This document shows, piece after piece, positions 7,978-53,520 of a stretch of 64,000 bases of DNA (within the stretch, counting starts at the first letter, position 1; each line of letters starts with the position of its first letter). Under the pieces are notes generated by a model. The model was not told the origin of the DNA and made no database searches. It saw nothing but the letters and a program-made list of their open reading frames with translations. The stretch is from Podarcis bocagei (Eukaryota): NCBI GenBank assembly GCA_964188305.1, contig OZ076899.1; one strand, given 5' to 3'. The position numbers and the translations under genes were made by a program.

Positions 7978-9329
7978 CTTTTGCCATAATAAATTTGTGA
8001 GCACCCACAAAACACTCTTTGTTTTTGCTGCAACAGACTAGCATGTCTACTGCCATCCTAAACACACTTAGCCCCACTGAGCACAGTGGAGCTTACTTCT
8101 GAGTAAATAGATGTAGGATTGTGCTACACACATTAAGGTTTGCCTGTTCTATTCCTACAAGTAAAAAAATGTGATTTTTTTTTTTAAATTACTCAAGCAT
8201 TTTTTAACACCTCCTGTTTTGAATATGTTTCCCAACATCTGATTTGGACTCATAGAAAGAATGATCAGTTTGCAAACCTTTGAAAGGATCTAGATTTGAA
8301 AAACAGCAGCGGCAGGTAGGCTCAGCAGCAACAAAAGCAATTGGAAAGAGCTGGTTTTCAGTGCCAGATAGTTTGCTTTGCTAGTAAACAGTATAATCTT
8401 GACAAACCAGAGTGAGTGTCTAAAATAAACTATAAAATTATGGCACAGTGCTGTCTTCCAGATCTCAAAGGGGTAAAGGGAGGGCTTCTTCCACTGTGTA
8501 GCTGAAAAGCCTTTTTAAAATCTCTGACAGTTCTAAGAAGCGGCTGCATAATGTGAAAAAACTCACTGTTCTATTACTCCTGCCAAAGCTGTGCCAAACA
8601 ACACGCCTCGCGCTCTGTGAGGAAGGCACAGAAAAGATGTTTTGAAGTAAGGTGGGCCCTCCCTGGCCTCCGTCGCGGCATGATGTGCCTCTTTGAACAG
8701 CCTGTTCCAGTGCAACAGAGGATGGTCAGTGTGATCCTCCAGAGTTCCTGGCACAGCTTTGAAAGGGGGTTAGTCAGATTTGCGGGGGATCAGTCACTCC
8801 ATCCATGGCTAGCAATGAGAGCTGCATGAAACTTCCACATTCAGAGGCAGTCGAACATTCAGAGCCAGTTATGGGGGATAGAAAGCAATAGCAGGAGAAT
8901 GTGACCTCTCTCTGCCCACAGCTCAGCTGTGTTACATATGCTGGAGTCAGTGGCAGGACATACTGCAAGAGCAACCAAAGTGGCAAATGTTTTTAGGGTG
9001 CCAATGAAGAAGCATGCAGCTCAAGAGGTGTGGCTCAACACCCTCTGCTAAGCTACAGATTCAGGAGCTTGGGGGGGGGGGGCTGAGCTAGGAACCCTTC
9101 GCCTGTGGGGCATGCAAGCTGAAAAGCCTCTCACGGGCATTGCAAGGTGTGCTGTGCTGTTATTGGGACATTGGATGTTTTGAGGGTCTTGAGTTCCCAG
9201 TGAATGCTCTGCAACTGGTCCCACCTGCAAAGGATCCTGGACTATGCTCCTCAGGTCTTACACTGCCATTATTCGGAGCAACAAAACATCCTGAGAGTGG
9301 TCACGTGGCTAGCCTTTGGTCATGTTCAC

Positions 9330-10590: not shown

Positions 10591-11039
10591 GATCCCTCAG
10601 CAAAAAGAAATACCGGTAGACTGGTGGTGGATCATAGGTTGAATGGAGTCCACCAAGACTCTCTATCAAACTCCCAGGACTTTCTCCAGGCCACAATCCA
10701 CATCAACCCTGCTTCACACTCTGCTTAATTGCCCTTGCCAAGCTAGACTACATCTTTACATTTTAATAATGCCTCTTGTGCCCTGGATGGAGGATGGAGA
10801 TGGGGGGCACTAAGTCCCTGAAAGAGCTGTTTCCAGTCAGAGTAGACCAGCCTCCCCCTAACATCTGGTGCCCTACAAATGTTGCTGGGCTCCTAATGCC
10901 ACCAGTCCCAACCAGCATGGCCACTGGTCAGGGATGATGGGGGTATCTGGAGCATGCCAGGTCAGAGAAGGCTGGAGTAAGCAACTCTGGGGTAGACTGA
11001 CATGTGGTCTGGCTTAGTCTGTGAATGCAACTTCGTGTA

Positions 11040-11987
11040 CCGTATTTTTCGCCCTATAAGACGCACTTTTCCCCCTCCAAAAATGAAGGGGAAATGTGGG
11101 TGCGTCTTATGGGGCGAATGCAGGCTTTCGCTGAAGCCTGGAGAGCGAGAGCGGTAGGTGCGCACCGACCCCTCTCGCTCTCCAGGCTTCGCGGACCTCT
11201 CCCCAAGCAGCGGGAATGCTCCCGCTGCTTGGGGAGAGTTGCCGGCATCCCGAAGCCTGCGCGCGCTGATCCCAGCGCCTGCAGGCTTCGCGGATCTCTC
11301 CGCAAGCAGCGGGAACGTTCCCGCTGCTTGGGGAGAGTTGCCGGCATCCCGAAGCCTGCGCGCGCTGATCCCAGCGCCTGCAGGCTTCGCGGATCTCTCC
11401 GCAAGCAGCGGGAACGTTCCCGCTGCTTGGGGAGAGTTGCAGGCATCCCGAAGCCTGCCCGCGCTGATCCCAGCGCCTGCAGGCTTCGCGGATCTCTCCG
11501 CAAGCAGCGGGAACGTTCCCGCTGCTTGGGGAGAGTTGCAGGCATCCCGAAGCCTGCCCGCGCTGATCCCAGCGCCTGCAGGCTTCGCGGATCTCTCCGC
11601 AAGCAGCGGGAACGTTCCCGCTGCTTGGGGAGAGTTGCAGGCATCCCGAAGCCTGCCCACGCTGATCCCAGCGCCTGCAGGCTTCGCGGATCTCTCCGCA
11701 AGCAGCGGGAACGGTCCCGCTGCTTGGGGAGAGTTGCAGGCATCCCGAAGCCTGCCCGCGCTGATCCCAGCGCCTGCAGGCTTCGCGGATCTCTCCGCAA
11801 GCAGCGGGAACCACCGCTGGGCTCCCACGGCTTGCAGAGAGCTGCCTGTTTGCGGGCTGGGGTCGGGGGAAGCTCGGGCTGCCCCAGCCCCGCGCCTGGG
11901 GGGGAAATAATTTTTTCCCTTTATTTCCCCCCCAAAAAACTAGGTGCGTCTTATGGGCCGGAGCGTCTTATGGGGCGCAAAATACGG
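11040..11987. mobile_element. Non-autonomous Tc1/mariner (pogo/Tigger-like) element carrying a tandem array
   Basis: TA|CCGTATTTTTCGCCCTATAAGACGC ... GCGTCTTATGGGGCGCAAAATACGG|TA TIRs with TA TSD. Confidence 0.85.
11184..11810. repeat. 99-bp GC-rich palindromic minisatellite, about 6.3 copies
   Basis: aggcttcgcgga recurs at 11184, 11283, 11382, 11481, 11580, 11679 and 11778. Confidence 0.95.
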
Positions 11988-13707
11988 TATGTTACCATGG
12001 GTCTCATTAGGGACCACTGGGGCTGAAAAATGATCTGCCAAGGAGCTATGATCCCTCCCCATAGGAGTTCCCAGGCTCAGTCCCTGGAATCTCCAGGTAG
12101 AAGGTTCAAGTAGCAGGTGAATGGAGGAGGCAATGCAGGGCTGGATGGACAAATAGCCCACCCTGTTGTAAGACGTTTCTGCATTCTCAGGAATGCATGT
12201 GTATGCATATAATGTGCATGCCAAGGAGTAATTTAATTGGTGATTGAATACAGTCAAAATTATAGGAATAAACATGGAATGGATGTATCTGCCAATTTTG
12301 GTTCCCCCTCATTGTTCCAGTCTCAAATTTTGTTTAATGCACCTAGGCCATCATTTGCAATTAAAAAAGACAGTCCTCCCAAACAGTTGTCAGTATTTTA
12401 GTCACTAACGTTTTCATTTAGGATGCAATTTTGCCTAACACACACATTTTTGCAAGCAATTTTCCTTAATAGAATGCATGTTTTGTGTTGTTTTCACAAA
12501 TATATGTGTTTTCTGCACACTTTCCCCTAGCATGTTCGGAGATGTGCCTTGCTTTGTGTATTGATTTCAGTAAGGGCAATTTTAGAAGGTTCACATAGAA
12601 AGTTTTGCAACCATAATCAAATCTCTCTCTCTGCCCCATCTTTGTTATAAAGAGATCTGAAACTGGCCTTGAGCAAGGCAGTGGAGAGCCAGTGAATAGC
12701 TCAGACCCCCCAGGTGGGTGTGTTTTTGGTTCACAACCGTGTTTTCACAGAATCTTGTACAAAGAAGGAACATCTGCCATGCTGCAAGATACCCCAAGTT
12801 CTACCTCCAAAGGGCAGCAGCCTGCTTTTTCTGACTCACAACAATACACATCCCTGATCACTGCTACAATTACACCTACAATTTTTCAAAGAATATGATG
12901 ACACCTATAAGGAAGAAAACAATAACTAGCTTTCAGAAACACCTGACAGTTCAATGTGCAGAAGCAGTATGCTTCAGTATGCTATTTTTGCTTTCCTTGT
13001 GTGGGAGAGCAAATGATCAACAAATTGTCATGGACAGGGAATTTTGCCGATTGCTCCCTTTAGTCTACCAGTCTTCAGCTGCTGAGCTGTGACCCAAAGG
13101 CAGTCATTCCCCATCAGTATTGCCACCATTTTCTCATTGTCCTCTTTAAAGTGGGGAAGGCAAAAAGATAGTGGAGAGAAAACGAGAAACAGACCTCCAC
13201 TAAAGACTTTGCCTGAGTCATTGTTTTGAAAATGCTGGTCTTTTTCTGTGAAGAACTGAATGTTTTAGGCTGGGATGAAGCCTTTGCAAAACACCCTGTT
13301 GATTACTATGGGTGTTGTGCGTGACTGGAGAGGAACCATAACACAAGTGCGTAGAATCTGCAGCAGCCTTCCCCAATCTGGGGACCTCCAGATATTTTGG
13401 ACTATAACTCCAATCAGCACCAGTCAGCACAGCTGTATGATGTGAGAGCTGATGGGAGTTGTAGTCCAAAAAGTTTGGAGGTCCTCAGGCTGGGTAAGGC
13501 TGATCTACATTTTATATTCAGTCCCAAAGCATACAAAGCTTTGCAGAAGCAGCTGCTTCTCTGGTTTGCTTCAGTGCCAGGGAATGTTGTTCACTCTCTT
13601 ACTGGCTGTGGTTGGAAGTATGGCTGATTCTGCCTGCCCACCTCCCCACAAAACCCCAGAAATCTGCTTTAGCTGCTAGAGAAATAACAACAACAAAGAA
13701 AAAATTA

Positions 13708-38050: not shown

Positions 38051-39538
38051 TATATAGTTGTGGTTGAAATTTTTAAAAAGGGATTAGTTAAATTAACAAT
38101 GGTTGATAGGTTACTAGGGAGAGGGATACTGCCCTCATGCCCTCCTTCCAGGGGCTTTCCACAGACATCAAAGTGGACATCATGGGAAAAGAGGATGTGG
38201 GACTAGAAGCCTTTAGCTTCTTACGATGTCAGCCACAACAGCTGATGGAGCCTCTATTTCCAGGGGCCGTCTGGCTAACTGATATTGGAGATAAACAGCT
38301 GGGGAACATTGTTGCCTTCAGTTTCTTGTGACTGTCCTGGAGGTCTCTGGATGGTGGGCCTTTGGTCTCATCCAGAAGGGCACTTCTTAGGTTCCTATAG
38401 AAAGTGGCTATCACCAGCTATTACTGGATTATTTGCCATGGTAGATAGATAAAACCTCCATGTACAGAGACGGTTCACCTCTGAATATGAGTTCTAGCTT
38501 CCTGGAGGCATCTGATGTACATGCTGGACTGAGGTCTCCTGGTCCAATTCAACAGAGCTTAAATTGCAGGGGGCGGGGGATACAGTGTACTTTAGAAGCT
38601 GTTGCTGTGGTTACCTTTTTAATACACATCTGTTACCCTTGCATGTCAACCCCTCGTTTCTCTATTTGTAGGGATGCTTCGACTCTGGGGATGCTGCAGC
38701 AGGCAAGTTCCTCCTTCCTTGAGAGCTTGCAAAAGAAGTCTCCTTGGACTCCAGATCTGTTCCAGCGGCTACAAAACTCCTGTTCTTAAGCAGAGCCGTA
38801 GCTAGGTGATCTTGCACCCCTGGCAGATTGCGCTTCCTAGCCACAGACAAACTAGCTCTTCTTTCCGCCTCCACCCATTCAATTCACCCTCTATTTAAAA
38901 CCTTTTCTTATGAGGCAATAATCAATATTTTTATTTATAGACATATTTATGGACATGTTTCTTAAGCCAATTTTGCACACACACCCCGTCTGCATCTCTG
39001 GTGGGGGCCCACCTCACCACCCCCTAGCTATGGCCCTGCTTGCTGTCAGACATGGCCAGGAAAGCGTTCTTCCTGAGACTGGTTATAACCTGTTAAAAGG
39101 TTCTAATTAGGGTCTTCAGCATGATACATCTGTTTGAGGATGCACATGTTGTGTCAAATTAGATGTGACGAGTCCAAGCACATTTTTATAAAAAATGTTG
39201 TGCTTTAAAAAATAAAATGGATTAAATGTTCTGGAGAGATTGCAGTTCTTTTGTGGCAACGAGAGAATGTGAGGAGTGGGGAGTGCTCTCTTTTCTAGAG
39301 GCCCTGCTTTTGGTGTATGGAAATTTACAACTGAAGCTTTTCCCTTCATGGATATAAATGGTGGGGGAAACTTCACGTGTCAGAAGTTAATGTAAAGGAA
39401 TGCTCCTCAATACTCAAGGCCCTGCCAAGGAGGAACTGAAATCAAGATAGACTGAAATCAAGATACATTATGTCGACAGCATCCCCTTGATCCACCAAGC
39501 TTGTAACTCCATCAGCAAAAAGAAATGAGATTTGTCTG

Positions 39539-40005
39539 TGTGGCGTTCGTACAGAGCCCCCGGTCGTTTCATGGACTATTGACCTGTACACCACTGCTTT
39601 ATTCTTCTGCTGCCACCAACCAGGTTTCTTCTGGTGAAATACTGAGTCTCAGTCAGGTTGTAAAATCAACAATGAAGATTAAAGTTTATTGAAGAACAAA
39701 TAAGTTTTTAAAATATTCAGAACGGTTTCTCAAATGCGCGCCCTTAACTAGATGTGGCACTATCTCACACTGTCACACTCTTCTCTCTCAGTTCTATCCC
39801 TGTCTCTCACTCTAGCTGTCACAACCGCTATGTTCATCTTAGTGGCTCTCTGTCTCTGACTCCTCTATCTCCCCATGGTAAAACCCCTGGGCTGAGCCTC
39901 AAAACCAGGTAGGCTCCACCTCTGAGCTTTCTCATGGGTCAATCTACATTAACCATTTCCATCCCCCTGTACAAACAAATTCACAAGGAATGGGCAAATG
40001 CCACA
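39539..40005 (-). mobile_element. Solo LTR (TG...CA, 5-bp TSD GTCTG)
   Basis: Termini tgtggcg...tgccaca; GTCTG at 39534-39538 and 40006-40010; homologous in reverse to 40083-40992. Confidence 0.75.
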
Positions 40006-40082
40006 GTCTGGAATTACTTGTCATTGAGAAACCCATGCTGGGTCTTAGGAATCACAGCATTCTTTTCTAAATGCTCACAAAC

Positions 40083-40992
40083 TGTGGCGTTTGCCTGTTC
40101 TTTTTAAAATGTCTGTAAAGGGGGAGAGAAAGAGTTAATAGGTAGACCAATAGAAAAGCCAGAGGCGGAGCCTACCTGTTCATAAAAGGGCTAAGCCCGA
40201 GGTTTGGGTTGGTTGGTTTTAGTTGGCTGGGAAAGGCAGTTGAGAAAGCAGTTGGCAGACAGTTGGAAATAGACAGTTAGTGCAGTTGGTTCTTGTGTGA
40301 GGGGAGGTAGAAGAGTTAGAGACAGGATAAAATAAGACTAAGAAGATAAAGAGTAACAACGTTTTGAATGCAGTTGAAGTTTATTTGTGTTTGCAATAAA
40401 CTACACCCTTCTTTGTTAACTTAAGAACCTGACTGAGACTTCTGTATTTTTCGCTCCATAAGAGGCACTTTTTTCTTCCTAAAAAGTAAGGGGAAATGTC
40501 TGTGCGTCTTATGGAGCGAACACGTGGTCCCTGGAGCCAAATTGCCCAGGGGTGAAAAGCAGATCATGCTTTTTTTTTTTTTTTTTGAAAGAGGAAAGTG
40601 GGTGTTGAAAGGAAGCAGCTGATCGGAAAGCGATCGGGGAGGGAGATAAGGGACGCTAGAGATAAAGGAGGCTGCTTGGGAGGGGGGAGGTAAAAGCCCA
40701 TGGATCCTCAGGATTTTTGCATTGGGTCACCCCAAATTCACCATCAGATCACATAGCATGTCCATGGCTACAGCCTGCACCACAAAAATCATACATCCAC
40801 TGTTTTGTTCAGAATTTTTGTTTTCTTGTTTTCCTCCTCTAAAAACTAGGTGCGTCTTATGGTCAGGTGCGTCTTATGGAGCGAAAAATACGGTAGGTGA
40901 TTTACCGGGGAGGACCTGGTTGGTGGCAGCGGATTAGTGGTGTATGGGTCAATAGTCCGTGAGATGACCGGGGGCTCTGTACAAACGCCACA
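40083..40992 (+). mobile_element. Solo LTR of the same family, interrupted by a pogo/Tigger-like MITE (about 40443-40893)
   Basis: tgtggcgtttg...caaacgccaca; CCAAT at about 40147, cataaaa at 40181, aataaa at about 40395. Decayed 5-bp TSD caaac/cagat. Confidence 0.75.
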
Positions 40993-41452
40993 CAGATTGA
41001 TTTGGGTGCTGGGCTGCTGCTGCACTACTTTTGGGAAAAGGGAGGTTTGAGAGGGTGGCATGAGGGCTGCTCTTTCTGTTGAGGGGGTGCTCCTGGTGGA
41101 ATCTGCCCCCTTATCCCCTGGGGTGGGGCTGTGGTGTTAGCTGGCATTTCCATCATGGAGGGGGGCCTGGGAAAGGGAGGGAGTTGGGAGGAGCTGTTTG
41201 CCCTCAGGGTCTTCCAGACACCCTCTGGGCTGAAAGGGAGAGAAAAAGAGAGGGACATTTCATTCATTCAGAAAATTACTTCTGTACTGCTTTGTCTCAC
41301 ACACACACACATATTCATTCATGGAAGCTGTTTCCAAAATTCCAAGCCATAGAAGGATTAAAGACAGGCATGCATTAACCCTTTGTGGAGGGCTGTGTCA
41401 TCCTCTTGTCATGAATATAATGCATGGGGATAAGTGAATGCTTACAAGAATA

Positions 41453-41809
41453 AAAGGTAAAGGTACCCCTGCCCGTACGGGCCAGTCGTGTCCGACTCTG
41501 GGGTTGCACGCCCATCTCGCTTAAGAGGCCGGGGGCCAGCGCTGTCCGAAGATACTTCCGGGTCACGTGGCCAGCGTGACAAGCTGCATCTGGCGAGCCA
41601 GCGCAGCACACGGAAACGCCGTTTACCTTCCTGCTAGTAAGCAGTCCCTATTTATCTACTTGCACCCGGGGGTGCTTTCGAACTGCTAGGTTGGCAGGTG
41701 CTGGGACCGAGCAACGGGAGCGCACCCCGCCGCGGGGATTCGAACCGCCGACCTGACGATCGGCAAGTCCTAGGTGCTGAGGTTTTACCCACAGCGCCAC
41801 CCGCGTCCC
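41453..41809 (-). mobile_element. Sauria SINE
   Basis: Family sequence; TSD gctt(a/g)caagaata. Confidence 0.9.
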
Positions 41810-43426
41810 GCTTGCAAGAATACAGAAGCACAAACACAGCTCCATATGCCAAGAAAGTGCTACAGAAAAATGGCAGTTGCTCTTTGAATTTTAAATCCCC
41901 TTAGGAAACAGCATCCTCTATAGGAAAAACAGAGTCAGTAGAAGGCTTGTCAACACCTCATCCATCAAACAGCAGGGGGCAAAGCAGAGACACACACCTA
42001 AAGGTATATACTGCCCTTAATCCACAGATCACAGGGTGTCGACGACATAAAAATGCAATATAAAAGCACAAATACATGACAAGAGTAAGAACAAAAAATA
42101 AACAAACCTATAACCCACCCCCATATAGTAACATTATTAATTAAAGCCTATAAACTCTCTTTTATGAATGAAAAACACTGTAAATGTTTGAATAAAATGT
42201 TATGTGCTGGCCAGATAAGGGGTATAACAGCATATGCTTGACCTTTCCAGCAAACTGTCAATGGGAAATACTAGACCTAACAAAAGACCTAAATAAAGCT
42301 ATCTACCCAAAAATATAGAACTATGTGAACAGACACTAATTGCAATAGCAAAGAGATATAATAATGTTGGCCCCAGAGGCGAAAGAGACACTTTGACTGG
42401 TCAGGGACTTGAACTAGTCAAGAAAGTTGTGATTCCCCACCGGCACTTTAAAAAAGTAAGGTCTTCCCATCTTCCTTTTGAGCAGCAGCAAAGATCTATC
42501 ACAAACTCAGGAGCGGAGAAAGAGTCAAATAAGCCTAATCAGGGTGATGATTTATCCCAAGAAAAGCAGAACCACCATAAAAAAATTAAGGTGTCTACTC
42601 AAACAATTTAAGTGACTCCCTACCAGAATAAGCCAATCCCCAAACAGCTGGCCCCAGACCAATTTGACTGGGTGGAACCAGCAGAAGAAGAATTGATATC
42701 CTCCTTCCTCAAACTCCCTGATGAAGAACAACACAGGATTATGGACAAATTAGACAAGCTACCATTTAAATTGAGACATTTATGGACATGTACCCAGCCC
42801 AATCTTGAAGGAACAGATTCAACAGAATCCCTTTGCAAAATCTGATTCTAAGATCACTGTTGAGGCAGAGGCCGAAAATATCCCTGCTAGACACAGAATA
42901 AATATCCTTGCTCTGGCAAAGAATTACTAGCCAACAGATATCTAGAACCACACGAACTGGGTAGCCCATTGGAATCAGCATAAGACACGCATTCTGAAGA
43001 GCATGAGAAGATGCAAACTGCCCAATTTCGCAATAGCAGCGTTTTTTGGGCACCACCAGTTGTGATAGATTAGATAGATAGATTAGAAGTAAAGCACACT
43101 GAGCATTCACGACATATCTTGTCATGGAACATGGCAGGGTGGATAAACGAATTTGTTGATCCTGAATTTATTACTTATATGCAATCATTTGATTTACTGT
43201 GCCTACAAGAAACTTGGCCAACAGATACCACCAGCATCCATTTACAAGGCTTTAAAATAGTGTCCTGCCCAGCAGTTAAAACAGGTAAATACGGATCTGG
43301 AAGTGGCGGTGTGGCTGTCCTCCTCTCTTGTGACACACAAAAATGGATATAAAGGAGCTGAAATGAACAAATAATGGTTATATCCGGACAGTATTAAATG
43401 AATTCATGTATCTGCTTAAATGTATA

Positions 43427-44204: not shown

Positions 44205-47200
44205 TGGTGGCCCAGGTAGGTCACTTAAAGAGTAGCAAAGCCCCCACTGTCATTCATCCAATGCAGGGAGTAAACTGTGGTCCTCTATTGGACACCAGAT
44301 GCTGCAGCAGGCTGTGCAGCCAAAACACCTCCCACAAGAAGAGGTCTGCTGTTTCTCTGGCCAATGGCAGGCCAGTGCAAGGGACAAAATGCACCATCTT
44401 GGTCAAGGTATCCACCATTACCAACATGGTAGTGGCCCCGGGATGGAGGCAGGTCCGTGATAAAGTCCAGTCTGCCAGAGCTGTTCAGGAATTGGTAGAG
44501 GTAGAATGTGTCCTGCCGGCTTGCCAGGACCATCTTTAGCCCAACGACAGACTGGGCAGGAGGCCACTATTGCTCCACCTTGACCCGAAGATGAGGCCAC
44601 CAAAAGTCCTTGGCCAGCAAATGAAGTTTTGAAGCGTCCGAAGTGCCCTGCCGGAAGATTGTCATGGCATAACGGCAGAAAAATTCCCCGTAGTGGACCA
44701 GGAGGGACATAATAACAGTCCCAAAAAAGAAGCACGTCCTGGTACAGAGTCCAATGGCAAGGAGTGTGTCCGGCCCATTCAGGCAATTCTTGCCGCTGGT
44801 GCTGCGAATAGGCATCCTGCTCATGCAGCTCCCACAGGAAGTCCCCAGGAACTTGGGCCAGAGCAAAGCTGGCAGGCGGCAAGGCCGTGGCTGTATGTGA
44901 CGTACCATCGGACTGCTCATACTCCGGCTTCCTAGACAGGGTATCAGCCTGCTGGTTCTGGCTGCGGGGAATATAGATGACATTGAAATTGAAGAACTGG
45001 GACCACTGGATCTGGCGTTGATTCAGCTTCTTGGCTAACTGGAGATGTTCTAGGTTCCAATGGTCTGTCCGATCTTCAACCAGATAACGGGCCCCCTCTA
45101 ACAAATGATGCCACATCTCAAAGGCCACTTCGACAGCCAATAGTTCCTCATCCCAAATGCCATAATTCTGATCTGCTGGTTGAAGTTTTTAGAAGTAGTA
45201 CCCACAGGGGTAGAACACCGAAGGCTGTGGGTCGGCCTGAAGTAGCGCTACCCCTACCGTAACATCCGAAGCATCGGTTTCCACCACAAACGGCAGTGTT
45301 GGGTCTGGTTGCCTAAGGATGGGTTCTGAAGCAAACACAGCCTTCAAGGCATCTAATGCCTCCTGAGCTGCACCATCCCAGACAAACACAGCCTTTTTCC
45401 GAAGGAGGACGGTCAGAGATGCTGTGACCTGAGTGAAGTGCAGGATGAACGAACAATAGTAGTTCGCAAATCCCAGTAGGTTCTGCACCTCCTTGGGGTT
45501 ATGGGGAGACTGCCAGGACAACATAGTCTCCACCTTGCCATCGGCTGAGATGCAATGGCCCAGGAAGTCGATGGTGGGCTTGTCAAACTTGCACTTCAAG
45601 AGGTTGGAGAACAGGCAATGCTCTTGTAATCTCTGCAGCAGGGTGTATACATGCTGCTCATGGTCAGTGGCTGAAGAGGAGTAGATCAGGATCTTGTCAA
45701 GGTAAACAAAGCGGTCAGGGAGGTCCTGGAACACATCATTCATGAAATGTTGGAAGACCAGGCACGTTGGTCAAGCTGAAGGGAATTACAGTGTACTCAA
45801 AGTGCCCATATCGTGTCCGAAATGCTGTCTTTCATCCATTACCCTCACAGATGTGCACCAGGTTATAGGCTCCCTGCAAGTCCAGCTTGGTGAATAGTGT
45901 GCCCCCCCCCCTGCAGCTGCTCCAAAATTTCAGCAATGAAGGGAAGTGAGTATCAATTATGGATGGTAACCTGGTTTAAACACCAGTTATCATTGCAAAG
46001 CCACAACTCCCCCAACTTACTCACAAAGCGTACAGAATCAGCAGCTGGTGAGGAAGAGGGTTATATAAAACATCTCTGCAGATTCTTGGTAATAATGAAC
46101 TCACGTAATGTGGCCCATTCAGGTTCCAACAAAGGGTAGATACAGGTTACTGGAATTTGAGCCCCAGGAATCAGGTTGATAGGACAGTTGTAGGGTCAAT
46201 GAAGTGGCAAGAGGGCTGCTTCTGTTTCACTGAACACATCAGCAAACTCGGCATACTTAGCAGGCAGGTCGGCAAGCCCATCCTTCTCCATTCCTGCTGC
46301 CAGGACTGCTAGTGCCAGACAGACATGGCTCATGCAGCCAGGGACACCAAAGCTGATTGTCCTCTGGGACCAACTGATGTGTGGATCATGGGCCTCCAAC
46401 CACTCCAGGCCCAACACAATGGGGAAATGGAGTGCAGAAGCCAAATAAAACTCTGCCTCCTCACTATGAGTCCCCACCTGCAGCTGCAGCTTGTCCACTG
46501 CCCAAGTCACCGGTCCCAAGGCCAAAAGCTGGCCATCAATTGTTTCCACCACAAGAGGTGACCGGGGATTCCCTGCCAGGTAGCAAAATCCATGGCCATG
46601 AAGTTGGCCATAGCCCCTGAATCGATCATGGCCCAGGTCTGCAGGGCTGGTCTCCCTCTCTGCGTCTCCTTTCATTGTCAACTGCCACCAAATGAGGGCG
46701 AATTCCCCCTATTTGCAGTGACTCCTCAGCAGGAGGCACTTCTGGAGCGGGTTGGGGCACGGCACCCCCTGGAGAAGGTGCCACCAGATGGGTCCTGTTG
46801 GCACTGTTGTAGGCATTGAGCAATCCTGAGACACAGGTGAATCAGGTTTTGCAGGCACTCTGTGTGGGCCAGTTTGTTTAGAACTGGGTCTGAAAGCCCT
46901 TCTTGAAACTGGTCCACTAGAGCTGCCTGATTCCAAGCCAATTCCTGTGCCAGCAGCTGAAATTCACTGGCATACTTCCCCACCAACTGATTTCTCTGTT
47001 TCAGCTTCCAGATCAGGCAGTTGGCAGTCTGAGTCCTGACGGGGTCCGTGTACATGCCCTGGAGTTGTTGCCTAAGGTGTCAAAATCGGCCAGCAATGGA
47101 CTCTCTTGTGGCAGCTTTCGGACAGCAGGCTGATGATGAACCCCACTTTATGCCCATATGTCGGAAAGTCCTCAGCCCGCAAACTGAGGACAACTGGAAC

Positions 47201-47255
47201 GGACCTCAAAAGGCTGGGAACTTTGCTGGACCCATCCAACTTTTCAGGGCCAGCA
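44205..47255 (-). mobile_element. Degenerate Ty3/Gypsy (sushi/PEG10-like clade) gag-pol internal region, no LTRs seen
   Basis: gag PEKLDG...KVGFIISLL and LKQ...YASEFQLLA...WN..AL.DQF.EGLS; protease MIDSGA; RT FVYLDKILIYS; RNase H VETDAS; integrase CHD...AGHFG...CPVC. Many stops and frameshifts. Confidence 0.92.
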
Positions 47256-47344
47256 TGGGAAAAGAGCCCCCCAGGGACAGTGTCCAGCCAGCAGCTGAGA
47301 AGGCCCCTTCCGTGAGCTCAGCCTCCTCTTCTCACACAGCTTAC

Positions 47345-47470
47345 CTGGATGACATGCCGGAGCCGAGCATCCCTCTGCTGCTTCGTTTTAAGAATCTCCA
47401 GGGCCCTGGCCTGCTGCAAGCTGCTTTTGAGGATGGCCTGCCGGAACTCCTCGCTTGCAGCCACACCAAA
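47345..47470 (-). CDS. ARHGEF11-like RhoGEF DH exon D (126 bp; FGVAASEEFRQAILKSSLQQARALEILKTKQQRDARLRHVIQ)
   Basis: 42 aa, aligning ungapped with recalled ARHGEF11 FDGPAREELQQVAAQFCSYQSIALELIKTKQRKESRFQLFMQ. ttccccccag| acceptor and CAG|gtaag donor, phase 0/0. Confidence 0.8.
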
Positions 47471-47551
47471 CTGGGGGGAAGGTAGGGGGCCTTGGAGAGG
47501 AAACACGCCTGGTGAGCATCAGGAAATCAAGGGCCCCAGTCCACTGGAGAC

Positions 47552-47628
47552 CCACAGGCAGCCCCTTCCCAGCTGCCGCCAGCCTCTCCCTTTCTCCTGC
47601 AGATCCCTCATCTTCCCCGACAGAGAAC
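47552..47628 (-). CDS. ARHGEF11-like RhoGEF DH exon C (about 77 bp; GSLSGKMRDLQEKGRGWRQLGRGCLW)
   Basis: ctcccag| acceptor, phase 1 start. Positionally equivalent to NSWCEAMKKLREEGPIIKEISDLMLAR. The donor (TGG|gtctcc) is weak, so the 3' boundary is uncertain. Confidence 0.55.
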
Positions 47629-48166
47629 CTGGGAGGGGAGGGAAGAAACACGGGAGGGGAGGTTGAGCAAGGCAATGGGAGTGGGGGAATAAAGAATAAC
47701 CCCAGCAGGGACAGGAGGGGGACGGAGATGGCCTGCTCTTTTTAAAATACCACTTTCTCAGTGGTGGAGAGACCAGGCGTCTCATTTATTTATGTCATTT
47801 ACACCCCACCTTACCCTACAAGGAACTTAAGAGGGTGTCCATGGATTCCCTCCTCAATTAATCCTCACAACAACCCTGTGAGGTAGGTTAGGCTCAGAGG
47901 CAGCAACTGGCTGCCCCCTCCATCCTCCCTGTCCAAGGCAGTGGACGCCTCTAAAGAATCCCCGTTCCTGGGCCTCCTGCCCTGCTGCTTGCGCCCCCCC
48001 CCCTGAAAAAGGCTGCAGTTGTGGCTGGGCCCCTTAGGCCTGATCCTGCTGCAGAGCTCTTTGGATGCTGTGCTTTTCTTTTAGTCCCTTCTCCCTCTGC
48101 CCCTGACCCACCCAGGAAGAAGCGGAGGCCTGGGCCAGCCACAGTCTGGAGGGGAAGCAGACTTAC

Positions 48167-48313
48167 CATGGATCTTAATCAGTTCTCTTAGGTCGGGGAA
48201 GAGGAGGGTCAGCTCCTCCTGCGAAAGGAGCTTTTCTGTATGGAGCTGCTGATAGAAGAGCACGGCCACAATACGAAGGGAGCTCAGGTGGGACGCCTCC
48301 ATCATAAACAGCT
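48167..48313 (-). CDS. ARHGEF11-like RhoGEF DH exon B (147 bp; ELFMMEASHLSSLRIVAVLFYQQLHTEKLLSQEELTLLFPDLRELIKIH)
   Basis: Aligns ungapped (49 aa, roughly half identical) to recalled ARHGEF11 ELFVTEASHLRTLRVLDLIFYQRMKKENLMPREELARLFPNLPELIEIH. cacag| acceptor and G|gtaagt donor. Confidence 0.85.
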
Positions 48314-49087
48314 CTGTGCAAAGAGGGCAGAAGGGGAAGAACATCAGGTAGAGGCCACATCCCAGCAGGGTCTGGAAGAGAGGCAGCTAAAGTGGACTGT
48401 TCTTTGAAAAAAGACTTGGGCTCTGCCTGGCAAGGAGAGATGGATCCTGCTCTCCTCCTGAACTGGGAGCAAAGCCCAAAGAGTGGCCATTGGTGGGGTG
48501 CCAAGGAGTTGGTCCTCCTGGCCCAAAGTGACCTCCATGCTGACTGGCAGGTGGCTGTCCAGCGCCTCAGGCAGGGGTCCCTCCTTCCCAGGCCTTCCTG
48601 GAGATGCCACTGCACTTGGGGCTCGTGCAGGCAAGGCAAGGGCTCCACCGCTGAGCTGTGGCCATTTGCCAGCCTGGACACCAGGAAGCACCCCATGGCT
48701 CTGGCGGTTTTAGGGCGGCGTGGCTGGTGTGGCTGCACTGGGCACCGCACTGCAGGGAGTGCCAAAACAGTGCTTTGGTACAGAGCACGAGAGGCGGCGG
48801 TGGGCCTTGTGGGTGGGAGTTGCACAGGGTGGCACTGGAATTTGAGAGCCCGAAGTCCACCACTGTCATTCTGGGTCTTGTTTGGAGAAAAATTATCTCC
48901 TGGCCATTTTTGAGAACTCAAAAGTTCCAGGCTACCCTTGGGAGGGAGAAGGACCCACTTCCCAGCTGATCTCCCAGGCACTCCCTCCCTCCCCATGCTT
49001 TACAAAATTGAAGATCCCCCCTGGACTCCCTTGCCTAATATTTATGAGGGAGACCTGAGGTAAGAGCCAGAGAAAGACCCTCCTCAC

Positions 49088-49249
49088 CATGAATGGCTTC
49101 CTGCCGGAGGACCTCCCTTGCCAAAAGAGAACCAGCGATGTTGCGGCCAGCCGTCTCTCCACAGGCTCCCCTCGTATTGAAAGACTTCCTCCAGCTCTGA
49201 GGGGAGGGAGGGGTCCGGCTTGGCTCTCCCATCTGAGACTCTGGCTGTT
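49088..49249 (-). CDS. ARHGEF11-like RhoGEF exon A (162 bp; ...SLLAREVLRQEAIH)
   Basis: ttttccacag| acceptor and G|gtgagg donor, phase 1/1, open. The C-terminus resembles the start of the ARHGEF11 DH domain (LTQREIDRQEVIN). Confidence 0.7.
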
Positions 49250-49284
49250 CTGTGGAAAAAGGGAGAAGCAAAGATCAGTTAGAC

Positions 49285-50422
49285 TGTAACAATAAAGTGA
49301 TGACTAAAATGCATAAGATATTATTGGAATGGGAAACAAAGGCTGAACAAGTGCAATCTTCAACAATATGTTGGGCAATAGATATTGGTCATAACATTGA
49401 AAAGGAGGCATGAGAATGATTGTGGAATATGGATATAAAATTTACAACTTGCTATGGTATAAGTGAAAATTATATGAAAAATGTTATATAGATGGTATTT
49501 AACACTTAGTAGACTGGCAAAAATGTATAAATCAAAAGCAAATAAGTGTTGGAAGTGTAAAGAGAAAGAAGGTTCATTTTTTTCACATGTGGTGGTCTTG
49601 TAATAAGGTCAAAGCTTACTGGCAAATGATATATAATAAATTGAAAAAATGTTTAAGGTAACATTTGTAAGAAAACCAGAAGCTTTTCTCTTGGGAATTA
49701 TAGGATCAGAACTACCTAAACAGTATAGAAATTTATTTACCGTATTTTTCGCTCTATAAGACGCACCAGACCACAAGACGCACCTAGTTTTTGGAGGAGG
49801 AAAACAAGAAAAAAAATATTCTGAATCTCAGAAGCCAGAACAGCAAGAGGGATTGCTGCGCAGTGAAAGCAGCAATCCCTCTTGCTGTTCTGGCTTCTGG
49901 GATAGCTGCGTAGCCTGCATTCGCTCCATAAGACGCACACACATTTCCCCTTACTTTTTAGGAGGGAAAAAGTGAGTCTTATAGAGCAAAAAATACGGTA
50001 TATATGCAGCTACAGCTGCAAGAATGGAAAGAAGTAGATGTCCCGATGAAAGAAGAATAGATAATAAAACTAATGGATGCAGAAATGGCAAAGCTTACCA
50101 GAAGAATAAGAAACTAAAGACTAAGAATAAGACACAAAACTTTTTATAATGGAATGGAAATGGTTTATTGAATATTTACAAATAAACTGTAAATGGATTA
50201 AAACGTTGGCGGGATTATTGCAAAAACCTGCAGTTTCAAAAATATATGTGAGAACAGATGATTAAAAGAATGAGTTAAGATAATTTGGAGTATGCAGAAA
50301 ATGTGAAAATAAATATAAGGAACCACAGAAAGAGCAGGAAGGAAGTCAAGGTTCGAAATGTTAGAATTATAGTTGAACTATTGTTGTAATATAAATTAAA
50401 ATTATTAAAAAAAATTAAAAAA
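49285..50422 (+). mobile_element. L1 LINE 3' fragment interrupted by a MITE
   Basis: [10 protein letters not shown]...HMWWSC ORF2 C-terminal remnant; A-rich tail. Confidence 0.8.
49740..49998 (-). mobile_element. 259-bp pogo/Tigger-like MITE
   Basis: TA|ccgtatttttcgctctataagac...gtcttatagagcaaaaaatacgg|TA; internal hairpin. Confidence 0.88.
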
Positions 50423-52219
50423 CCCAACTCTGTGCCAAGTCACAACAACCTTTTAAACAGACAAAAGGCACTGCCAGTTACGGTACTTCTTATTTTGCAA
50501 AGAGTGCAGAGCTGATCCCCAGGGCTGCTCTCCTGCAGATGACTAACAAGGTCCTCTGATCCACTTTCCACATTGGACAGCAAGTGGCTGATTCTGGCTA
50601 CTCCTGATCAGAGTCAGGATAAACCCCTGGCCCAGTGTTATGATGCTAAATTACCCTTATGTTTTCTCCATCAAGCCTCCCCAAACCTGGTTCCCTCCAG
50701 ATGTTGCAACGGGACTCCAACTGTTGCAATTTGGATGGTGACAAAAAAGGAAACTCAGAGAATTCATCAGAAAACTCCCTGGGAAAATTGCTGGCTCACT
50801 TAACACAGCATGGGAGTTAGAAAGGTCAAATAACCAAGGAGCATCTTTAAAAACTAGGCATGTGGTGGGGGCACAAATCTTCAGGATACCTCCCCCCTTT
50901 CCCATGACTTTACCTTCTACCATCCGGCACATTATGCAAAACATCTTCAGAACCAGAAAGACCACAAAAGGCTTTCAAGACCACAAAAGAAGGATCACTG
51001 CTTTATGGGCTGCTAACTGATCCAACTGGCTCTCAACTGACCCAGGCCTCCTAGAACTCACCTGGCCTCCTAGGAAACAAAATATTCTGCAGGATTCCCC
51101 AGCGGGTTGTGAGGTCAGAGCCTGGCCAAGGACTGGAGCCAATGGGCTCTGGGCTCCAGGAATGCTCTCTCTGCCAGGCCCATGGCACCACTGGGCAACT
51201 TCAGGAAGCTGCCAAGCGTCTGGCCCAGCCCTGCATTTACCCCCAGGCAGAAGGCTCAGGCAGCTGGATCTAGGCTCTCCTTAAGAGTTTCCCCAAATCC
51301 TCCCAGCTTTGCATCCCTCTGGATAATCGAGAAAATAAGGCAGGCCAGGACTGTGGTCCAGTTTCTGGCACCTCCTTAAAACTCACCTGTTTGCCCAGAT
51401 GTTGTTGGCTGGCTAGTGGTCCATCATTTAGTCATGGTGTATTAGATCTTTAAATATTTTTTTGGGGGGGGCTTCATTGTATTATGGAGCCACCTTCTCT
51501 CTCTGCCTGGGTGCTCACCCACATTCGCCACCTCCAGGCATCTTTTTAAAACATGTTTGTGCACCTAGAGGCCTTTCTTGGTGCTTTATTGTATTATTAC
51601 ATGAAAACTGCATCTTTTCTCCGAGGAACTCAAAGTGGTGTACAAGATGCAATGCCTCTCTCCAAATTATCCTCACAATCACCCTGTGAGGTAGGCTAGG
51701 CTGAGAGCCCGAAACCTGGTCCAAGGTCAGCCAGGGAGCTTGATAGCCAAGAGGGGACTTGAACCCTGGACACCTGGGTCCTAGTCTGGTCTGGACACCG
51801 CAGTGTATTAACAACTTGGATGGTTTTAAAGGAGGATCAGACAATGAAGGAGAAGGCAAACAGTGACTACTAGCCATGGTTGCAATACTTTGCCTTCACA
51901 ATCGCAATCAGTAACGCTTTGGAACAGGGCCAAATTATTCAGGGGTGTTACCAAGGGCAGAACCAGTCCACAGTGTGGGGAAATATTTCAAGCGAGAGGG
52001 CTTCATATTAGGGAACACCTTTTTTTTGGCCGGGGAGGGGGGACTTTTCTAACACTTGGTGGATGGGCTTCCTTTCCTTGCCCAACAGCACCTTTCTGGA
52101 AGCAATGCTGGCTTAGAAGATGGAGAGTGGAAGGACCTGGCCCCCGGCCTACCTCACAGGGTCGTTGTGAGGAAAACGTAACGAAACAATACCAGCCATC
52201 CAAAACCTGCACCAAAGCA

Positions 52220-52871
52220 TGGACGTGCCCAAGGATTAAGGCTTTCTGGGAAATGATATAAAATGAATTGAAAAAGGTATTTAAATATACCTTCCTGAAG
52301 AAACCAGAGGCCTTTCTCCTGGGCATGGTCGGCCAATTGGTGCCAACGAAAGACAGAACTTTTTTATGTACGCTACAACAGCAGCAAGAATACTCATCGC
52401 AAAGTATTGGAAGACACAAGATTTACCCACTCTGGAAGAATGGCAGATGAAAATGATGGACTACATGGAATTGGCGGAAATGACTGGCAGAATCCGTGAC
52501 CAGGGAGAAGAGTCGGTGGAAGAAGATTGGAAGAAATTCAAAGACTATTTACAGAAATATTGTAAAATTAATGAATGTTAGAATGATGTTGGATAGAAAT
52601 TAAATGGTTTCCAGCTGCAATGCTTTAAGAGACATGAAAAAAAAGGTTTATAAATGGGTAAAAGCTTAATGGCAAGGATTTGCTGAACTAACAAATTGAA
52701 GTGGAATACAAAAAAGGGAGGTATGAGGAGGTCCGGGGAAATAAGTGTAAGAAAAATATGCAATGGAAAATTAAGGTGTTTTTAACTGTTTTTATTTTGT
52801 ATTTTTTCTTGTATTTTTTTCATTTTTACTGTAATATCTTAAAATTTTTAATAAATATCTTATTAAAAAAA
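52220..52871 (+). mobile_element. Young 5'-truncated L1 with perfect 18-bp TSD
   Basis: aaaacctgcaccaaagca at 52202-52219 and 52872-52889; YATTAARILIAKYWK ORF2 end; aataaa plus polyA. Confidence 0.9.
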
Positions 52872-52919
52872 AAAACCTGCACCAAAGCAGCTCATGTGAG
52901 AGAGGGAGGGCAGGACTGT

Positions 52920-53520
52920 AATGCGCGGACTGGGCAGTAGGCTCCCGCCTAGCGCTCGAGGAGCGCGGAGCCGTCTCCCTCAGCGGAGCCGCCCGCTCGT
53001 CCGCCCGCGCTGGCTCCACGCCGGGCTCCCCCTCAGGAAAGGGCGCGCAGGCTGGGCGGGCCGGCGCCGGTTCGGCCTTGTATGGGAAACGAGGCGCGGC
53101 CGGCGGGCCCGCGGGAGGAGCCCGGAGGGGAGGCGCCGCCCAGCTCCACTCGCGCCGGCTCCAAAGTTCCCTCAGGACTCGGCGGCGGCGGCTGGCTGTG
53201 TGATGGCGCGGGCGCCCCGCCGGCCTCCCCACCGCCGCGCTCGGCCCGGAGCGCCTTGAGCCCAGCCTGCCAGTGAGCGAGACAGGAGCCGCAGCCGGAG
53301 CGCAGCCGGCCAGCCAGCGAGCCATGGTGAGTGAGGCGTCTCCGTGGGCCTCGGCCGCGGGGTACCAGGGGCGCTCGGCTCGTAGCGCCGGAGCCGGGCG
53401 GAGGACCCGAGCCTCCCCTGCCGCCTTCGCCGCCCGGTTTGGGGGCCAAAGCGGAAAGTCGCGGGCGGTGAAGTTCGCTTGGTTCTGCAAGAGCGGGGAA
53501 GCTCTGTTTGTAGCCAGGGC
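52920..53520 (+). promoter_or_regulatory. CpG-island promoter of probable MYO1E, with GC box (53054-53060) and CArG-like box CCTTGTATGG (53076-53085)
   Basis: Dense, undepleted CpGs, GGGCGGG, and a one-mismatch CC(A/T)6GG upstream of an ATG|GTGAGT exon end. Confidence 0.8.
53324..53326 (+). CDS. MYO1E: Probable MYO1E exon 1 coding part (initiator Met only, followed by the GTGAGT donor); intron 1 runs past the window end
   Basis: gccATG|gtgagt at the end of a GC-rich 5'UTR. In mammals MYO1E lies head-to-head with FAM81A and has an ATG-only exon 1. No myosin-coding exon lies in the window, so the identity rests on synteny. Confidence 0.7.

Follow-up and report, generated by a model that had tools for sequence, protein, structure and literature searches.

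A probable pseudogene fragment between MYO1E and FAM81A in Podarcis, from a dispersed family of ARHGEF11-derived duplicates

Introduction

The RhoGEF-like segment that lies between MYO1E and FAM81A in Podarcis bocagei is, in all likelihood, a truncated and mutated copy belonging to a Podarcis family of unprocessed ARHGEF11-derived duplicates, and we infer that it has no protein function. It was found in a window of 64,000 nucleotides (contig OZ076899.1 of assembly GCA_964188305.1), by which we mean the whole stretch of DNA that was analysed. A literature search found no paper that treats Podarcis and ARHGEF11 together. In an earlier sequence-only reading of the window, the segment had been described as part of a RhoGEF-like gene with intact frames and splice sites. 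Here, we compare it with its ortholog in P. lilfordi, with the protein of its ortholog in P. muralis and with further copies elsewhere in these two genomes. The window copy is most likely a dead pseudogene fragment rather than a new working RhoGEF.

Splice edges, reading frame and homology

The sequence-only reading had joined four blocks of the minus strand (49249–49088, 48313–48167, 47628–47552 and 47470–47345), each preceded by AG and followed by GT, and had seen no stops in them. These edges are present; the blocks are separated by introns of 774, 538 and 81 nt and join into a single open frame of 170 codons. The Pfam RhoGEF profile, which had been suggested as a check, matches the spliced peptide above its threshold (33.9 bits against a cut-off of 27.6), with the match confined to profile positions 1–115 of 180. 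The best solved relatives of the peptide in the PDB are four ARHGEF11 DH-PH chains (E of about 6e-26, including 3T06 and 1XCG), followed by ARHGEF12 (4e-16) and then ARHGEF1 (1e-12). The ARHGEF11 motifs named in the sequence-only reading recur in the PDB alignment. The statement that the peptides align without gaps needs correction, as the alignment has a single one-residue gap. Over exons 1b–3a, the identity is 58% to turtle ARHGEF11, 53% to goose and 48% to marmot, compared with 44% to the Pelobates 11-like proteins and 31–34% to ARHGEF12 and ARHGEF1. On these comparisons, the RhoGEF homology of the window peptide is judged to be real and far beyond chance, and the peptide can be taken as a genuine partial DH domain that is closest to ARHGEF11.

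Exon structure of the window copy

The family unit was numbered from its exon peptides as a start exon ('exon 0') plus exons 1–10, and the parts that can be recognized in the window are collected in Table 1 together with the other copies. Comparison with these copies overturns the earlier statement that the frames and splice sites are intact. Compared with its counterparts in L002, L004 and L007, exon 0 lacks 4 nt between 50921 and 50920 through a deletion; exon 1 has lost 2 nt at about 49158–49159, and both deletions are common to the P. lilfordi ortholog. Because of the 2-nt deletion, exon 1 opens with about 30 codons in a foreign frame, and since the two deletions sum to six nucleotides the ancestral frame is regained at 'ETAGRN' within this exon. 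The coordinates and edges first given for exon 1 stand, and its first 30 or so codons lie outside the ancestral frame of the family.

The lesion in exon 3 is larger. A 62-nt deletion, present in the window only, has removed about 39 nt of the exon end, the GTAAG donor and about 23 nt of the intron. As the true donor was lost with it, the exon 3 of the sequence-only reading runs through the intron to a cryptic GT. Its 5' part is true exon, while its last 38 nt (47589–47552) and the GT that follows belong to the intron; this intron-3 part ('RGWRQLGRGCLW', 47552–47589) has no similarity to any RhoGEF.

Exons 5–10, which encode CR3 of the DH domain and the PH domain, were not found in the window; exons of this series are present in L002, L003, L006 and L007. 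No motif resembling DH CR3 occurs in any of the six frames of the window, and exon searches and tblastn likewise bear out the earlier observation that the window contains neither the PH domain nor the remainder of the DH domain. Where these exons would be expected (they take up about 2.45 kb in L003), a gypsy-type remnant and a LINE endonuclease piece now stand. The copy makes better sense as a fragment in decay than as a gene that has been kept. A PH domain directly following the DH domain is encoded by exons present in L003, L006 and L007. What coding capacity remains in the window amounts to at most the first ~115 of ~180 DH positions, with no exon 5, no CR3 and no PH domain, and for these reasons its product is predicted to be unable to act as an exchange factor. 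A tblastn search with full-length frog ARHGEF11 (P0009) detected no PDZ or RGS-like exons in the window or at any Podarcis locus; only residues 786–1000 match.

Table 1. Features of the RhoGEF-like unit in the window and positions of its further copies in Podarcis
Feature	Position	Strand	Basis or remarks
Exon 0 (upstream start exon)	50914–50932	−	ATG at 50932; GTAAAG donor after 50914; P0002 and P0003 models
Exon 1 (linker before DH and DH start)	49088–49249	−	Exon alignment
Exon 2 (DH CR1, 'ELFMMEASHL...')	48167–48313	−	Intact in the window
Exon 3, retained true 5' part	47590–47628	−	39–41 nt of the ancestral 80 nt; deletion junction 47588–47590
Intron-3 sequence earlier read as the 3' half of exon 3	47552–47589	−	Runs to a chance GT (GTCTCC)
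Exon 4 (DH, 'FGVAASEEF...VIQ')	47345–47470	−	Intact; GTAAGC donor
Start of intron 4	47250–47344	−	Homology to all paralogs stops at 47250–47253
Upstream part of the unit, with exon 0	49250–51932	−	86–96% identity to L002, L004 and L007
3' flank of the unit, interrupted by repeats	39162–43368	−	Homologous to sequence after exon 10 in L003 and L004
Ty3/gypsy-type LTR retroelement remnant (gag, RT, RNase H, integrase zinc finger)	44421–47055	−	Pfam; common to P. lilfordi
SINE-like insertion (~260 nt), upstream of exon 1	49740–49998	.	Absent from P. lilfordi L001 and L002
Copy L002	P. lilfordi OX395139.1, 46.60 Mb		Adjoins L24e and Rab genes; exons 0–5
Copy L003	P. lilfordi OX395139.1, 45.60 Mb		Exons 4–10, with CR3 motif 'QRLASYPLLL' and PH domain
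Copy L004	P. lilfordi OX395139.1, 44.80 Mb		
Copies L006a and L006b	P. lilfordi OX395127.1, 11.0 Mb		Two inverted copies; exons up to 7
Copy L007	P. muralis OZ076955.1, 4.85 Mb		Exons up to 7

Orthologs and dispersed copies in Podarcis

The orthologous locus of P. lilfordi (L001, protein P0002) matches the window at 97% identity across the greater part of its extent. There, the RhoGEF-like model comes after a gene with Myosin_head, TH1 and SH3 domains and before an RT_RNaseH_2 piece, beyond which lies a FAM81 gene; the myosin and FAM81 genes are the neighbours that the earlier reading had given, and an exon of FAM81A lies in the window itself. The fragment between MYO1E and FAM81A is thus orthologous between the Podarcis species. 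A protein search returned only Podarcis proteins, namely P0001 of P. muralis (89% identity), with which the P. muralis ortholog was compared at the protein level, and several P. lilfordi models; the family proteins are P0001–P0005, P0045, P0082 and P0130. P0001 is annotated as 'rho guanine nucleotide exchange factor 11-like', and the orthologous locus carries this protein-coding annotation in P. lilfordi as well as in P. muralis. In the model of the latter, exon 4 is translated in the wrong frame.

A count of paralogous copies, also proposed in the sequence-only reading, gives at least seven further copies of the fragment across P. lilfordi and P. muralis. The loci of the family proteins occupy four places on P. 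lilfordi OX395139.1, a single place with two inverted copies on OX395127.1 and another on P. muralis OZ076955.1, and their neighbouring genes differ. L007 adjoins a putative PIP5K-type gene; the idea that this gene puts the basal copies next to the native ARHGEF11 locus was dropped, its identity being no more than putative. DNA homology between the window and these paralogs extends beyond the exons, covering 47250–51932 (74–96% identity) and resuming after a gap from 43368 down to 39162. A hint of direction comes from L007, which lies on another chromosome: its positions 8195–8437 are homologous to window positions 52872–53117, reaching to about 220 nt from the MYO1E start, and the MYO1E–FAM81A locus may therefore be the source of this P. 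muralis copy.

Each copy examined bears its own lesions in the form of stops, deletions or insertions. The donor of exon 2 is lost in L002; exons 1 and 2 are truncated in L004; exon 4 has a 13-nt deletion in L006a and exon 5 a stop in L006b; in L007, exon 2 bears an insertion while exons 4 and 6 contain stops; and L003 is without exons 0–3. The confinement of the lesions to single copies makes it probable that the Podarcis copies had an intact common ancestor. Protein searches at lengths of 91–289, 133–423 and 354–1125 residues retrieved no intact family protein, and hence no intact copy of the diverged short DH-PH parent within these ranges; protein and representative searches for such a parent returned only the Podarcis fragments, true ARHGEF11, ARHGEF12 and ARHGEF1, and frog and fish 11-like proteins.

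A 10-nt deletion in exon 2 is found in two non-orthologous P. lilfordi copies, the one beside MYO1E (L001, region of 12374) and the one beside RSL24D1 (L002, region of 17112), and is absent from the window and from P. muralis. Either gene conversion between the paralogs or parallel loss would account for it. Gene conversion was also considered as the cause of the lower identity between the window and L001 across the fragment; it was rejected, as three-way site counts show no clear skew and indels give most of the drop.

Origin of the family

A tree of the DH-PH region (38 rows, IQ-TREE), again following a suggestion of the sequence-only reading, places the family inside the ARHGEF11 clade rather than beside ARHGEF12 or ARHGEF1. 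The eight Podarcis copies form one clade (100/100) with a stem of 0.99 changes per site, and their distribution over several chromosomes agrees with the dispersed, lineage-specific family that had been proposed. This clade is nested in the ARHGEF11 clade (100/99) and within it in tetrapod ARHGEF11 (94/91), with coelacanth and teleost ARHGEF11 splitting off before the position of the Podarcis family. Amniote or sauropsid ARHGEF11 may be its sister group, or else the Pelobates 11-like proteins, a pairing supported at 68/66 for which long-branch attraction is a risk; AU tests of the alternative placements give p values of 0.34–0.40. Because the identity is highest to turtle ARHGEF11 and lower to the Pelobates 11-like proteins, the sequence evidence favours an origin on the reptile side.

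The gene structure points to the same descent. The introns after exons 1, 2 and 3 are placed as in unspliced bird ARHGEF11 transcripts (P0097 and P0085), and the later intron positions agree with the Pelobates locus. Together with the tree and the PDB matches, these positions support descent from ARHGEF11, and the Podarcis copies are DNA-level, unprocessed duplicates; a processed pseudogene would have no introns and a poly(A) tail, and here introns are present. The retained introns and the long stem agree with the earlier view of a DNA-level duplicate, not a retrocopy, of a fast-evolving ARHGEF11-like paralogue.

On the favoured explanation, the family descends from a short ARHGEF11-derived gene made up of the start exon, the DH domain and the PH domain (exons 0–10). 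The window copy at first spanned the minus strand from about 51.9 kb down to 39.2 kb. Exons 5–10 have been lost, their place now being taken by the gypsy-type remnant and the LINE fragment. The copy has also acquired the short deletions of 4 nt in exon 0 and 2 nt in exon 1 and, only in the species of the window, the 62-nt deletion that took the last part of exon 3 together with the splice donor.

Selection and transcription

The dN/dS values were calculated by the method of Nei and Gojobori, which ignores transition and CpG bias. Between the window and the P. lilfordi ortholog the ratio is 0.54, derived from only seven non-synonymous and four synonymous differences, and it cannot be told from neutral. 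Pairs of paralogs give ratios of 0.35–1.05 from small counts (11–72 differences per pair). Such values would fit weak past constraint and its absence alike. RNA-derived contigs of 14 runs contain 7–17% of the sampled words of 46500–50500, so some transcription of the fragment is possible. Any such RNA would be no more than a by-product, such as a junk or non-coding transcript that ends in the retroelement as the gene models of the sister species do (in a short exon at about 45685–45727).

Alternative explanations

Some features speak against decay. Splicing still yields an open frame, which the deletions of 4 and 2 nt jointly restore, possibly as a mark of selection for the open reading frame; annotation in both P. 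muralis and P. lilfordi treats the locus as protein-coding; and several dN/dS values between paralogs, from their small counts, are below 1. A young lineage-specific coding gene would be read from these features if exons 0–4 were joined to a retroelement-derived terminal exon and the small partial-DH protein had a role other than nucleotide exchange, for example as a decoy for RhoA or ARHGEF11 partners; the frame opens at the ATG of exon 0, gene models exist in both sister species and RNA runs have words in common with the stretch. We consider such a gene highly unlikely, however, because the disabling lesions differ by species (the 62-nt deletion here, the 10-nt deletion of exon 2 in P. lilfordi), exon 4 is out of frame in the P. 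muralis model and the ortholog comparison is indistinguishable from neutral evolution. Moreover, from what is established about DH domains, for example through the structure of PDZ-RhoGEF with RhoA (1XCG), neither folding nor Rho binding would be expected of half a domain that has no CR3. The RNA words could also come from a chimeric RhoGEF-DH::FAM81A transcript in which the exons act as alternative 5' exons, or from a non-coding RNA transcribed divergently out of the MYO1E CpG island at 53.0–54.0 kb. The fragment does lie upstream of FAM81A on the same strand, but 32 kb separate it from the first FAM81A coding exon (about 15600–15361, minus strand), the RhoGEF-like, retroelement and FAM81 models are separate in the P. 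lilfordi annotation, and the RhoGEF-like models stop inside the retroelement at about 45.7 kb; the probability that we attach to either form is very slight.

Two further possibilities concern how the family arose or spread. Capture of the DH-PH piece by a transposable element, in place of segmental duplication, would change only the mechanism and is compatible with a decayed unprocessed duplicate. It would explain copies on at least two chromosomes, the end points in common with the window copy (51931–51932 in L002, L004 and L007; 39162 in L003 and L004) and the retroelement pieces adjoining two copies, that of the window and L004. It nevertheless seems quite unlikely: the unit has no flanking terminal repeats, direct or inverted, homology between paralogs passes the end point of the window copy (by 217 nt more in L002 and L004, and to 53117 in L007), the kept introns argue against RNA-mediated copying and L003 has exons 4–10 without a retroelement. 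The fragment might instead be left over from an old fourth paralogue among the RGS-RhoGEFs, one that arose in the vertebrate whole-genome duplications, survived on the MYO1E chromosome and disappeared from mammals; in favour, the region lies on a chromosome arm that is paralogous to the ARHGEF11 region, and the stem branch is long. This reading is excluded by the tree, in which the family sits within tetrapod ARHGEF11, after the coelacanth and teleost split, and the highest identity is to turtle ARHGEF11; we give it practically no credence.

The preferred reading, a decayed unprocessed duplicate, also fits what is seen in other unprocessed pseudogene fragments. Introns are kept at the parental positions, the copy is partial, frame-breaking indels and truncation beside a retroelement remnant are evident relative to the paralogs, and each copy has its own lesions. 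It differs from such fragments in that the parent is not the conserved ARHGEF11 but an already highly diverged short DH-PH derivative. With the DH domain of ARHGEF11 (PDZ-RhoGEF), the window copy has in common the closest sequence relationship, the intron positions and the CR1 'E-A-S-H-L' motif; unlike ARHGEF11, neither it nor the paralog loci have PDZ or RGS-like exons, the window copy is without CR3 and PH, and the family stands on a branch of 0.99.

The nearest parallel to the family as a whole is found in the spadefoot toad Pelobates cultripes, whose 11-like proteins (P0006, P0015, P0021 and P0219) are likewise short, multi-copy, composed of DH and PH without RGS or PDZ, and placed on a long branch inside tetrapod ARHGEF11. 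In contrast to the Podarcis fragments, the DH-PH units of the frog proteins are complete, with three tandem DH domains in P0006. The Pelobates genes are a separate expansion of DH-PH-only ARHGEF11 derivatives, and the support and AU values given above neither establish nor reject that they share an origin with the Podarcis family. The gene for P0006 (L005, OW240915.1, 8.22–8.27 Mb) encodes its three DH domains, all complete, before one PH domain, and several short genes related to it lie on other Pelobates chromosomes.

Implications

As a pseudogene fragment, the window copy is of local interest, and annotation of the orthologous locus already exists for two Podarcis genomes. The copy also carries a warning that short models named 'rho guanine nucleotide exchange factor 11-like' of this kind are broken duplicates. 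A modest but real point is that the conserved ARHGEF11 yielded a very diverged DH-PH-only derivative in one lizard lineage, which spread widely and is now decaying.

The private lesions and the long stem branch also suggest a more far-reaching, and rather unlikely, possibility. Podarcis, and perhaps lacertids, would have had, and may still have, a fast-evolving short DH-PH paralogue of ARHGEF11 that was amplified over several chromosomes and is maybe related to the spadefoot toad genes. An intact expressed member may then exist beyond the protein sets that were searched, and the P. muralis copy between MYO1E and FAM81A may make a small novel protein ending in retroelement sequence; exons 0–4 are still open in sister species such as P. 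muralis. If there is an intact member, it would be a lineage-specific Rho regulator worth testing.

Repeats and flanking genes

Several features around the fragment were noted in the course of the analysis. The SINE-like element upstream of exon 1, an insertion specific to the species of the window, forms an inverted repeat of 91–93% identity with a copy 9 kb away (40444–40895). A repeat of about 650 nt (52220–52871) has inserted immediately before the MYO1E CpG island, on its upstream side; it is absent from the P. lilfordi ortholog, and similar copies of it occur in L003 and L002. A small 'CpG island' at 41.5–42.0 kb coincides with a multi-copy repeat at 41453–41809, of which L003 has at least five copies, and is therefore probably not a promoter. 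The P. lilfordi FAM81 gene model (L001 15626–25056, 515 residues) begins inside the gypsy remnant and thus probably incorporates retroelement-derived exons. A strong CpG island (11001–12000; GC 0.63–0.65, CpG observed/expected 0.8–0.94) lies downstream of the first FAM81A coding exons.
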